A stretch of DNA of 64,000 bases, taken from contig OZ037773.1 in the NCBI GenBank assembly GCA_964035545.1, forward strand, positions 124,001-188,000, read 5' to 3'. The stretch comes from Bugula neritina. Its lineage: Eukaryota > Animalia > Bryozoa. Below, in pieces: positions 3,932-9,285 of this stretch (the first letter of the stretch is position 1; every line of letters starts with the position of its first letter). A model generated the notes under the pieces. That model saw only the letters and a list, made by a program, of their open reading frames with translations, searched no databases and had not been told where the DNA came from. Both the position numbers and the translations under genes were made by a program.

Positions 3932-4670
3932 ATATAATATAATATATATTATAACAATATATAATATATTATTATACTATATATATATATATATATATAT
4001 ATATATATATATATATATATATATATATTGTAGTAATTTGTCCAATTACTGAGTGTGAGTTATTTACTTGCGTATAGCTAGCTGGTTATTCTGTTATCAA
4101 TTACTAAGGTAGCTGTCGAGTAATTATATTTATTATCCACAATAAAGCATAAACCAAACATCACATCAAATTATCCTATACAAGAGTCAACTACTAACAC
4201 ATGTTACTACTACAAGCCTCCGCTTACAACAACGTGATATAATCTTAATAACCGGGGAAGTGTCACGTGACTCGGAAGCATATCTTCCGGAGCTGCTAAT
4301 TGGTTGCTACATAAGAGTCTAAGTATTCCAAGAATAGGGAGAGGGCGATTCCTGTATTTGTACTTGCACTACTCACTACACCGTCCCCCCCAGCAGAAAG
4401 CCCTACTTTCTGATAACACAATAAAAAAACATAATGAAAAACCATACAATAATCCAAAAAGGAAATATTCATAAGTAAACCCACAAAGAGTAAGAAAAGA
4501 AATAGTTAAACACGACAACGTTTACATTAGAAGACAACAGGGTGATCGATCACACACATCTAGTCAGCTATTTAGAGAGAGGGTGCTTACCAGCACGCGG
4601 GCCAATGTCGGAGCGCTCGTCACATCCTAAACGAGCTATAGCTCAACGAAGGTGCCTACCCCACGCATTC

Positions 4671-5718
4671 TCATTGGTTGGACTCTGCTTCTTGTAGCGA
4701 CCGTGCTCTGTGTCGAGCCTGTCGGGCCCGTAGCCGCCTCTTCAGTCGTCCCACTGAGTCCTTCAACTGGTATAGACCTGTCGTCGTATCCAGCAAGTCA
4801 GGGGCAAGTTGTGTGAACTCGGCTTGCAGTCTTAGAAGCCGCTCTTCTACGTTAGCCAGCTGGCTAGGTCTTGGTGGGGTTATAGGGGTCTCCGTTATAC
4901 GGGATATGGTTGTCTCTTCTACTTCTGGGGTGTTGCTAGGGTTGACGGGAGTAGGAGGTGGGCCCTGAACCATAGGGGACTTATGGCGGGCAGATAGTAA
5001 CAGTACGTGAAACCCTGACGTTAGTGCGGCCAGGGTAATAGCCTTCCTGATGACTGGCTTGATGGCATCCAGGTATAGGGGGAAACTGTCTTCATCAACA
5101 GTGTGGTTCTCTCCGGCGAAGCAGCTTAGCTTATGTACTGTCACGGGATACGGGTAGACGTCGTGGAACCCGCAGGGACAGAAGTGGAGTAGGAAATGGG
5201 CATCCACATGTAAACGCAAGGAGCGGTGTGACGGGCACTCCTCAAAGCAGACCTGGCAGGTTCGGTGTGGTCCACTGGGTCCCCAGGCTTCTTCAATTCT
5301 CCTCTCTGTCGTGGGTGACACCCAACGGTGTCGTCGGCGGAGTACTACTGGTATGCCATTCTCCATTACAGGCTCTTCTTCCATAGACAGAGAGGTTGGC
5401 TGGTCCCGTGACCGGGAGGTGGTCACTCGAGTGTGATCTGAAAGAGTAGCAGTGTTAAAGATTATACACTGCGGCACCGTCGGCGTGTACAGCCTGACCG
5501 GTACTCTGTTCAGTTACACTCGTGAGATTCAGGCTAATGAATAGTTGATGGAGAACACACTCGCTATGATAGATTATTTAAAATCAAAGTCGACGTGTAT
5601 TCCCACCACTGTTTATCATTATCGAATCTCCAGCTAGCTAGTGTAGCTGACTGATGCAGTCTAGTTATCGTACCAAAAACATAATTAACTCACCCTTCGA
5701 TCCAGAATAGTAAGACAT
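4671..5718 (-). CDS. Spliced accessory ORF3 of copy B: C2H2 plus C2HC zinc fingers, Pro/Thr linker, coiled coil and Arg-rich end (about 263 aa)
   Basis: Exon 1 5718-5694 (ATG...AAG G|GTGAGT), intron 5693-5438 ending CTCTTTCAG, exon 2 5437-4671 in frame. Motifs CQVC-x12-H-x3-H and CPC-x12-H-x3-C. Same exon structure in copy D. Confidence 0.78.
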
Positions 5719-5741
5719 TTTGGAATGAAAGTGGTAACTGA

Positions 5742-8000: not shown

Positions 8001-8899
8001 CCTGGTGGGAGTTGAGGGCAGTTTCTCTGGAAATGTCCTGGCCTTCCGCATTCCCAGCAGAAGTGGTGCCCCATGCCTGGTGATTGTACCTGCGGCCCGC
8101 AAGGCTCACGGGCAGTATCTACCTGGCTTGGGGAGGCTAATGTGGTGACCAGTTTATCTAGCATGTCAGTCATCTGTGAGATTTTTGACGCTAGTGACAT
8201 CTGGTTCACACTAGCCACCGTGGAGGGTTCCGCATTTAATTCAGTGTGAGCAGTAGAGTGCTCCGTGGTCACCTGGCGGGAGGCCACGCGGTTGCGGTGC
8301 ATATGAGTCGCCAAGAGATAGGCTTCTCCCACCGCAAGTGCATCTTCGACTGTGGTGACTCCCCTCGCTTGGAGTTGATGGTGGAGCCCCAAGTCGTTGA
8401 TGGACTGCACGAAGGCATCATAGGTATACCTCTCACGGTGTACCGGAGGCAGATCGCGGAATGCAATCTGCGCTAATGGGTACACCGTGGCAGCGTGCTC
8501 TTCTAGTGACGTGTGAGGATCACGCCGCATCCTCTGTAGACGGGCCCGCGCATCTATGGGAGAGATGCCAAAACGGGCCCGCAGGGAAGCAAAGATTCCG
8601 TCTATGTCAGGTCCAGCTCCGTACGGCTTAGCTTTGCCCGTCAACGCCATCCTGAGCTTTAGCAACGCCACCCTTGGCGGCCATTCTGCAATCTCCATCA
8701 CATCCTGGAATTCTTGGATGAACTGCTCCACTGCTTCTTCGCCAGTGAAGTTGGGCGCCTTCAGCCGGTATCTATCTTCACCATGCTCTCTAAGAATTCT
8801 CACTTCTTCATCTAACACCACTGGTTCCACAGGTATATCAAAATCATCTCTCTCACCTTCATTCAGTGGAATGGGTAGCTCCGTGCCGTCTTCTGCCAT
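7949..8899 (-). CDS. gag: Gag of copy B
   Basis: Intact ORF, first ATG at 8899 (MAEDGTEL); CWECGRPGHFQRNC knuckle. Confidence 0.9.
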   Translation of the reverse strand: MAEDGTELPIPLNEGERDDFDIPVEPVVLDEEVRILREHGEDRYRLKAPNFTGEEAVEQFIQEFQDVMEIAEWPPRVALLKLRMALTGKAKPYGAGPDIDGIFASLRARFGISPIDARARLQRMRRDPHTSLEEHAATVYPLAQIAFRDLPPVHRERYTYDAFVQSINDLGLHHQLQARGVTTVEDALAVGEAYLLATHMHRNRVASRQVTTEHSTAHTELNAEPSTVASVNQMSLASKISQMTDMLDKLVTTLASPSQVDTAREPCGPQVQSPGMGHHFCWECGRPGHFQRNCPQLPPGLNYPGPQMFPPPAGRL

Positions 8900-9285
8900 G
8901 ACTGCTATACGCAAGATCCCACCGCTGCCACCACTGTAGTAATTTGTGCAATTACTGAGCGTGAGTTATTTACTTGCGTATAGCTAGCTGGTTATTCTGT
9001 TATCAATTACTAAGGTAGCTGTCGAGTAATTATATTTATTATCCACAATAAAGCATAAACCAAACATCACATCAAATTATCCTATACAAGAGTCAACTAC
9101 TAACACATGTTACTACTACAAGCCTCCGCTTACAACAACGTGATATAATCTTAATAACCCGGGAAGTGTACGTGACTCGGAAGCATATCTTCCGGAGCTG
9201 CTAATTGGTTGCTACATAAGAGTCTAAGTATTCCAAGAATAGGGAGAGGGCGATTCCTGTATTTGTACTTGCACTACTCACTACA

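Follow-up and report, generated by a model that had tools for sequence, protein, structure and literature searches.

Can an LTR (long terminal repeat) retrotransposon that has lost its reverse transcriptase (RT) and the catalytic core of its integrase persist, diversify and keep moving as a lineage of its own? This question is raised by an element that we call B, found in a stretch of 64,000 nucleotides from the bryozoan Bugula neritina (GenBank assembly GCA_964035545.1, contig OZ037773.1, positions 124,001 to 188,000 of the forward strand). This whole stretch is referred to as the window, and its positions are used throughout. A first-pass annotation, made from the sequence alone, had proposed an old non-autonomous lineage with at least two LTR families that keeps Gag, protease and the integrase HHCC domain translatable. 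Our analysis confirms what was seen and supports the core of this proposal, in a broader form: B very probably belongs to an old, monophyletic, diversified and recently mobile "semi-autonomous" lineage of Ty3/gypsy type, which would borrow its missing enzymes from relatives. Other copies in the window are named A, C, D and D2. Relatives beyond it, taken from two JGI metagenomes labelled Bugula neritina (3300002729 and 3300003318), carry L or P numbers.

Structure and coding content of element B

Element B is 5257 bp long and carries three open reading frames (ORFs); its parts are listed in Table 1. The two LTRs have TG...CA termini and are 98.9% identical over 352 nt, in line with the earlier estimate of about 99%, and a primer-binding site (PBS), a G-rich polypurine tract (PPT) and an intact gag complete the element. 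The flanks (4025-4028/9286-9289) are compatible with a 4-bp ATAT target duplication, but the (TA)n context makes them uninformative. A scan of the window for the PBS gave five matches, where none is expected by chance. This PBS would be of the tRNA-Leu type; a tRNA search of the window found no tRNA, and an Rfam scan of the window returned no match.

The pol frame of B is -1 relative to gag, and their overlap contains the heptamer G_TTA_AAC, which occurs at the same place in eight other copies (among them A, D, L001, L002, L123, L126, and L128); the Gag-Pol protein of B is probably made by -1 frameshifting at this site. The frame, which the first-pass annotation had described as open for over 750 codons, comprises 786, in the following order: a pre-protease region, the protease, a conserved post-protease domain, a linker, the integrase N-terminal extension with the HHCC zinc-binding domain (NED+HHCC), a stub containing the first strand of the integrase core, and a proline-rich tail. 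The only Pfam matches in pol are to an aspartyl protease and to Integrase_H2C2, and no Pfam match to RVT, RNase H or rve was obtained in any ORF of B. Matches to PDB sequences are with retroviral-like aspartic protease 1 and with residues 44-111 of the prototype foamy virus (PFV) integrase chain. The surviving parts of pol keep the protease - RT - RNase H - integrase order seen in the relatives C and L123/P0016, and B is a Ty3/gypsy-type (Metaviridae-like) LTR retrotransposon. It is not an autonomous one: its own RT, RNase H and integrase catalytic core are not encoded.

Three other classifications were considered and rejected. A domesticated retroelement gene (SASPase- or PEG10-like) is ruled out because B is multi-copy and has LTRs, a PBS, a PPT and a target-site duplication. 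The terminal-repeat retrotransposons with a GAG domain (TR-GAG) are under 4 kb with a single, Gag-only ORF, a description that does not fit 5257 bp with three ORFs. Finally, the large retrotransposon derivatives (LARD) and terminal-repeat retrotransposons in miniature (TRIM) have no coding capacity, whereas coding modules are present in B.

Table 1. Positions of element B, its parts and the related copies in the window
Feature	Position	Strand	Description
Element B	4029..9285	-	complete LTR retrotransposon lacking RT and integrase core, in a (TA)n tract
B 5' LTR	8935..9285	-	351 bp, TGTAG...CTACA
B PBS	8916..8933	-	TGGTGGCAGCGGTGGGAT, adjoins 5' LTR
B gag ORF	7949..8914	-	likely ATG at 8899, about 316 aa, CCHC zinc knuckle
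G_TTA_AAC heptamer	7994..8000	-	candidate -1 frameshift site within gag/pol overlap
B pol ORF	5742..8102	-	786 codons
B aspartyl protease domain	7353..7631	-	pol aa 158-250 (Pfam); catalytic D-S-G at 7584-7592
RT/RNase H deletion junction of B	6750..6755	-	codons 450|451, nt 6753|6752, in frame
B integrase HHCC zinc-binding domain	6285..6452	-	Integrase_H2C2, pol aa 551-606 (Pfam); N-terminal extension begins at aa 451
Integrase-core deletion junction of B	6186..6191	-	codons about 638|639, nt ~6189|6188, in frame
Last 54 codons of pol	5745..5906	-	proportion of synonymous differences (pS) 0.17-0.35, dN/dS 0.45-1.4
B ORF3	4671..5477	-	268 codons if read from GTG; about 237 aa from the likely start, ATG at 5384
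B PPT	4381..4391	-	G-rich, directly upstream of 3' LTR
B 3' LTR	4029..4380	-	352 bp
Copy A (D family)	1..1667	-	5' LTR about 1317-1667, PBS 1298-1315, intact gag 346-1281; cut by window edge, pol outside view
Solo LTR, B family	9410..9761	+	92-95% identical to B/L001 LTRs
Copy C	11383..17554	-	degenerate autonomous-type relative: gag, protease, RT, RNase H, complete integrase, pol tail
D	29704..34198	+	5' LTR 29704-30051, PBS 30053-30070, gag 30086-31021, pol 31286-33352 with both deletions
D2	34199..37075	-	2.9-kb further-deleted D-family derivative, LTRs 99% identical
Fragment of another autonomous-type relative	38279..39531	-	protease and start of RT

Two in-frame deletions and their shared junctions

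Junctions were examined in protein and nucleotide alignments of B with the autonomous-type copies C and L123 and with five other deleted families (L002, L125, L126, L127, and L128), which had been retrieved by exact protein look-up. The first-pass annotation had seen a jump from just before RT to just after RNase H at about 6753 and the omission of the integrase DDE core at about 6192; both deletions were recovered, and the second junction now lies a little further along the element (Table 1). The RT/RNase H deletion begins a few codons inside RT and stops immediately short of a conserved YDW..GQLQQ motif, and the sequence GGAGGTC is found at both RT-side breakpoints in C and L123. Its junction is common to all five of the other deleted families, while B/L001 and D/D2 each carry a further in-frame deletion nested around it, of about 110 nt in B. 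The integrase deletion fuses the first core strand (the VAVDL/ETVNL motif, ending in ...MTP) to the sequence ...QED.AR.ERPLP near the end of the integrase; this junction is identical in B, L001, D, L002, L125, L126, and L128, and AGAGG-like microhomology is present at its breakpoints. Private breakpoints were therefore not what we found: the integrase junction is shared by seven copies, and that of RT is either shared or nested. The motifs reported for the first catalytic Asp (ETVNL in B, ETANL in D, and VAVDL in C) are all present. Some deleted families retain this residue (EAVDL, KAVDL), and it is Asn in B, D, L125, and L128, a variation that fits the near-neutral ratio of non-synonymous to synonymous divergence (dN/dS) of the stub.

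The copy named D had been described as showing the same two-deletion layout with different LTRs and a clearly diverged gag. The layout and the divergence hold, since its LTRs are about 67-69% identical to those of B and its Gag protein about 69%; however, the RT junctions of B and D are not identical, each being nested in its own way, and D is damaged in that its frame is broken at about 31263-31286, before the protease, and its ORF3 and 3' end are lost at the junction with D2.

From these alignments we propose two separate losses in an ancestor, one of RT/RNase H and one of the catalytic core of integrase with its C-terminal part; both would have been in-frame deletions joining short direct microhomologies, the kind of event that template switching or slippage is expected to produce. 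The same short direct repeats, present at both junctions in autonomous copies, would also suit another history, in which deletions recurred at microhomology hot spots in different autonomous progenitors, so that the families are independent and short-lived and their low dN/dS comes from autonomous ancestors. Secondary deletions did arise repeatedly (B, D, D2, L127, and L002), and the P0012/L127 family adjoins the RT-bearing group in the protease tree described below. Several observations speak against recurrence, and we consider it very unlikely. First, both junctions occur together in all deleted families that retain the integrase region. Second, deleted copies have derived residues in common upstream of the RT junction, for example LNRA in place of LTRA. 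Third, a single change of state suffices in both of our trees, HHCC branches are uniformly longer within the deleted clade, and the internal divergence of this clade falls only a little short of its distance from autonomous relatives.

Origin, diversity and recent mobility of the lineage

The two Bugula neritina-labelled metagenomes contain a protein 99% identical to the pol product of B and dozens of more distant relatives. The protease-region tree (34 sequences) requires, as an unrooted split, one change between RT-bearing and RT-less sequences, with support of 99/97. Its outgroup, P0037, has a long branch and leaves the root unsupported, and we rely on the unrooted split together with the HHCC tree, which includes deeper integrase-bearing outgroups. 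In the HHCC tree (43 sequences), a single clade (94/93) takes in all seven core-less rows; it is nested among the C-like copies that bear an integrase, and branches are markedly longer inside it. Both trees thus point to a single origin of the deleted lineage. Its members without RT and integrase core are B, L001, D, D2, L002, L125-L128, and P0283, and at least the following lines can be told apart in the deleted clade: B; L002; D/D2/P0023; P0003-P0008/L125/L126/L128; and L127. By this evidence the deleted copies comprise at least four or five diverged families, where at least two had been proposed at first. They differ by about 28% at the nucleotide level, and divergence at four-fold sites among the lines is 0.3-0.4.

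B-type elements have been mobile recently. The LTRs of B are nearly identical, as described above, and L001, which matches B at 98.9% identity over 3669 nt and has its structure and deletions, differs in the upstream flank, which makes it an independent insertion of the B family. In addition, a solo LTR of this family has a clean 4-bp ATAT target duplication with an empty paralogous site at 3242-3246, and the LTRs of the D-family derivative D2 are 99% identical. Pol is deleted in every copy with B-type or D-type LTRs whose interior is visible (B, L001, D, and D2), and a full pol beneath these LTRs, which was looked for, is present in none of the four.

Internal deletions are common in LTR elements, and frame breaks or stops are present in D, L002, and L128; it could accordingly be argued that these are ordinary dead deletion derivatives without persistence as a lineage, whose frames are open only because they are young. 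We regard this as extremely unlikely. The same architecture and long open frames are maintained despite the nucleotide and four-fold-site divergence given above, dN/dS is well below 1 for four modules (Table 2), and at least two near-identical B copies exist together with an older solo LTR.

Outside the Bugula neritina samples, a protein-pattern scan of a separate metagenome contig collection gave 81 pattern matches with no relative among them, and scanning that collection for the exact PBS brought up only gypsy elements that are unrelated or very distant. The identical 18-nt PBS stands beside very distant gypsy-type gag/pol sequences (21-35% identity) in L062, L089, L034, L086, and L094, from unrelated metagenomes; this PBS is consequently a widely used one.

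Selection on the retained modules

The ratios in Table 2 were obtained by the pairwise Nei-Gojobori method from codon alignments, with bootstrapping over codons. In the deleted clade, gag, protease and NED+HHCC all have ratios below 1, most of the bootstrap upper limits also staying under this value, and for NED+HHCC the majority of pairs have no replicate that reaches it; values near 1, for which these three modules were checked, are not observed. D(S/T)G is present in every deleted-type protein that covers the protease site, and each of the 10 deleted-type sequences spanning the HHCC domain retains its four ligands. The retained modules are accordingly still under purifying selection, which is relaxed in comparison with the autonomous pair, most of all on the integrase stub. 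As for the frame itself, simulated neutral change of 15% in codons 371-786 left it without a stop in only 0.4% of trials (P = 0.004), so the long open frame of B is not due to chance.

Table 2. Pairwise dN/dS by module; ranges exclude the near-identical D-D2 pair, and that of the protease core covers well-preserved copy pairs, excluding also L127-L002 (0.69) and D-D2 (0.50)
Module	Deleted clade	Autonomous pair C-L123
gag	0.22-0.30	0.13
Protease core	0.14-0.23	0.07
Post-protease domain	0.22-0.76	0.18
NED+HHCC	0.30-0.61	0.12
Linkers	0.55-0.86	0.38
pol tail	0.5-1.8	0.76
ORF3	0.16-0.28	n/a

The end of pol behaves differently. Its last 54 codons show conservation not only at non-synonymous but also at synonymous sites, in deleted and autonomous copies alike, which suggests that this segment holds a cis-acting element at the nucleotide level, perhaps connected with the expression of ORF3. 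A compression of pS in pol by high GC content at third codon positions (GC3) was considered and ruled out, GC3 being only about 0.6. This segment bears on a further possibility, namely that the HHCC domain and the tail are conserved as nucleic acid (a packaging, dimerisation, splicing or internal-promoter signal) and not as protein. Such a signal would account for the low divergence of the last 54 codons at both kinds of sites, and ORF3, lying downstream of pol, needs some route of expression. For NED+HHCC, on the other hand, pS is normal (0.33-0.52 in the deeper pairs) and non-synonymous divergence is lower, the zinc ligands are invariant, and the frame is open across weakly constrained linkers. 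An explanation at the nucleic-acid level is for these reasons unlikely.

Divergence is also uneven along single elements. Between D and D2, pS is 0.24 in gag and 0.05 in HHCC, about a fivefold difference, and mosaic divergence of this kind, to which the greater divergence of ORF3 (below) also belongs, indicates recombination among lines.

A third open reading frame

The first-pass annotation missed ORF3, which is part of B and among the most constrained genes of the element. It is found in L125 (2586-3344), L128 (4605-5333), and the autonomous-type L123 (10475-11231); its presence in the last makes it ancestral to the family. L002 is without its N-terminal part. In B the encoded protein combines a conserved Cys/His core of C2H2-like spacing (about 5196-5258) with a helix of ~60 residues at its C-terminus (about 4680-4862), whose end is basic. 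A search identified 126 homologs at E <= 1e-3, none of them named, from JGI, ENA or Logan assemblies, and a profile search added more distant relatives over the Cys/His core, some with sub-threshold C2H2 matches; neither Pfam nor PDB sequences gave a match. The AlphaFold model (32 homologs) has a mean predicted local distance difference test score (pLDDT) of 59 and is confident for the C-terminal helix only. Features of an errantivirus-like envelope glycoprotein were assessed by eye only: there is no N-terminal signal sequence and only one weakly hydrophobic stretch. ORF3 could encode a second accessory factor, of zinc-finger/coiled-coil type, of this gypsy clade.

In most copy pairs, with the exception of D-L125, synonymous or four-fold divergence in ORF3 is about twice that of gag/pol, with an excess of transversions. 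This could be due to exchange of modules between lines or to a higher mutation rate just upstream of the PPT.

Candidate helpers and the proposed cycle

Many relatives that bear RT or the integrase core occur in the samples that yielded the deleted copies, and long open frames are preserved in some of them (P0016, 735 aa; P0160, 417 aa). As for signals in cis, the PBS of B is identical in A, D, and D2, differs at 2/18 positions in C, and matches L123 over its first 16 nt with one mismatch. The PPT and about 25 nt upstream of it are conserved in the autonomous-type C and L123, forming a block that is nearly identical in B, C, and L123. LTR ends are conserved as well (start TGT(A/G)GTG..., end ...A(C/T)(A/T)ACA). 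The deleted lineage thus lives alongside RT- and integrase-carrying relatives whose cis signals match its own.

We propose that the LTR termini, the same PBS and the conserved PPT have been kept for the enzymes of a helper, and that four coding modules have been kept beside them: Gag; the protease with its downstream conserved domain; NED+HHCC; and ORF3. B would supply its own Gag, protease and ORF3 protein, and its RNA would be packaged, reverse-transcribed and integrated by RT and integrase provided in trans by co-resident C/L123-type relatives. We infer this trans-mobilisation from the sequences compared here.

The role of the HHCC stub is a matter of conjecture. Our guess is that it joins mixed assemblies with the integrase or Gag-Pol of the helper, with interference as the alternative. 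The more specific proposal that NED+HHCC, placed after the protease in Gag-Pol, is a selected "adaptor", which plugs the polyprotein or complementary DNA (cDNA) complex of B into helper integrase or Gag-Pol assemblies, is possible but on the whole doubtful; if true, the adaptor would be a hijacking device at the protein level on top of the shared cis signals. Interference would mean that B is a defective-interfering element or copy-number regulator, whose Gag and protease-HHCC products poison helper particles or intasomes and are maintained on that account by selection on the host or on the element. An HHCC stub that has no catalytic partner in cis would suit such a role, and truncated Gag or integrase fragments can be dominant negative, as with Ty1 p22 and fragments of retroviral integrases. 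Recent insertions in several families, however, require a helper cycle that is productive and not blocked, and we give this reading a very low probability, although interference and helper-dependent mobilisation are not mutually exclusive.

It is important to note that several points weigh against a helper-dependent lineage with selected protein modules. Among the copies in the window and the retrieved relatives no intact full-length helper was found, C and L123 both being broken; the earlier idea of a helper with the same PBS and PPT is thereby borne out as regards matching autonomous-type relatives and not as regards an intact one. L123, the only autonomous copy with both LTRs, has LTRs 91.5% identical, against 99% for B and D2. 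The constraint on NED+HHCC is clearly relaxed (dN/dS about 0.4 versus 0.12, the latter in one autonomous pair), the codon alignments were derived from tblastn, which favours conserved columns, and were analysed by a simple pairwise method, and recombination could have brought in part of the constraint that was measured. Moreover, the L127/P0012 family has lost HHCC altogether, and D2 has neither the protease active site nor most of gag, yet its LTRs are 99% identical. Together with the loss in L002, these cases imply that a single round of mobilisation does not depend on any of these modules in cis; the conservation of modules is an effect at the level of the lineage. With these points taken into account, a semi-autonomous lineage dependent on its relatives is still the explanation that we prefer.

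Other copies and features of the window

The window is eukaryotic, its AT-rich DNA being interrupted by GC-rich islands of transposons. One end of copy C bears a PPT with the start of an LTR, and the opposite end a PBS. A search for its LTR pair (ends at 10900-11420 and 17555-18000) found that the two flanks do not match as LTRs, for which reason C cannot be dated; it may be chimeric or have lost one LTR. ORF3 was not detected in this copy.

In D2, the N-terminus of gag is fused in frame to the protease downstream of the catalytic Asp, followed by HHCC, and the region from HHCC to the C-terminus of ORF3 is missing. D and D2 abut tail to tail (34150-34260): D is without the ORF3 C-terminus and its 3' LTR, and the 3' LTR of D2 without its last few bases. 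The junction is a rearrangement or deletion and not a clean nested insertion. The proline-rich tail of D pol contains a tandem duplication of about 120 bp (32845-33080, + strand; 89% identical) that keeps the frame.

A preference for ATAT/(TA)n targets is apparent from the ATAT duplication (9406-9765 with the LTR between) and empty site of the solo LTR and from the position of B inside (TA)n. Copy A, of a different family and in opposite orientation, lies at exactly the same position as the solo LTR in another copy of a 420-bp repeat (1664-1671). This repeat, "X", of about 420 bp, occurs four times, once inverted (1664-3664, 9762-10183), and forms with AT-rich microsatellite DNA a palindromic arrangement of ~1.6-2 kb.

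An unrelated long interspersed nuclear element (LINE), mapped at 40225-43032 and with its two ORFs at 40225-43559 on the - strand, adjoins the gypsy fragment at 38279-39531; it has an intact 935-aa ORF with endonuclease and RT and an upstream ORF of 202 aa. Finally, AT-rich host DNA contains a segmental duplication of about 5 kb (18928-23777 and 49840-54751, 91-95% identical, about 30.9 kb apart), and a 20-bp tandem repeat, strongly skewed in both GC and AT, forms a long array from 60721 to 64000, the end of the window.

Comparison with known systems and significance

The first-pass annotation stated that this architecture was not known from animals, a remark that has to be set in the context of Gag-Pro analogues in wheat and sugar beet and of partly coding elements in the mouse. 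In the mouse, an internally deleted form of the intracisternal A particle (IAP I-delta-1) and the early transposon (ETn) of the ETn/MusD pair illustrate that forms with internal deletions or without coding capacity are mobilised in trans, and that their activity can exceed that of the full-length form. IAP I-delta-1 keeps RT and integrase, with gag fused to pol, and ETn is non-coding; neither system is known as a lineage without RT in which protease and an integrase zinc domain are maintained by selection.

The closest known analogues of the B lineage are the Gag-Pro elements of wheat, where RLG_Sabrina_SA is a "semi-autonomous" Gag-Pro LTR retrotransposon with RLG_Wilma as its proposed partner (PMC9744471); families retaining GAG/PROT are also present in sugar beet (PMC13570524). 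As in the B lineage, these are Ty3/gypsy-type populations that lack RT and integrase coding as a whole, keep an intact Gag-protease frame, share PBS and LTR termini with an autonomous partner and have diversified into sub-families. Among the partner-pairing criteria set out in the wheat study (PMC9744471), the coding content, the same PBS, and the conserved LTR termini and PPT are all found in the B lineage. The B lineage differs in its bryozoan host, in the retention of HHCC and a third ORF under selection, in its in-frame junctions that are still legible, and in its clear homology to putative helpers across gag, protease, HHCC, and ORF3.

Other plant systems share fewer features. RLG_Quinta, the partner of RLG_Cereba in Triticeae centromeres, is a non-autonomous lineage that arose once from an autonomous family (PMC11302176). 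It resembles the B lineage in its long persistence, in having its own Gag, and in the PBS, PPT, and LTR ends of its partner; unlike B, it codes for Gag together with a domain whose function is unknown, without any protease or integrase part, and is targeted to centromeres through a chromodomain-type motif of the helper. The TR-GAG elements of plants (PMC4350172) are likewise non-autonomous LTR elements with a retained and apparently functional gag, but their short, single Gag ORF contrasts with the 5.26 kb of B, whose three ORFs include protease and HHCC. LARD and TRIM elements also depend on helpers and keep cis signals; their lack of coding capacity stands against the four conserved protein modules of the B lineage.

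Helper-dependent LTR lineages with coding capacity are well known in plants and rarely described in animals, and the B lineage would be a clean animal example of a long-lived parasite of a parasite among LTR retrotransposons. Its founding deletions can be read base by base, and its retained modules can be ranked by constraint, which is highest for protease, ORF3, and gag, followed by the integrase zinc domain, with linkers close to neutral. This makes testable which proteins a helper-dependent retroelement must make itself and which it may borrow. The apparent ATAT/(TA)n preference would be a further handle on the integrase of the helper, and the orphan HHCC stub and ORF3 are two parts whose role is open to direct testing.

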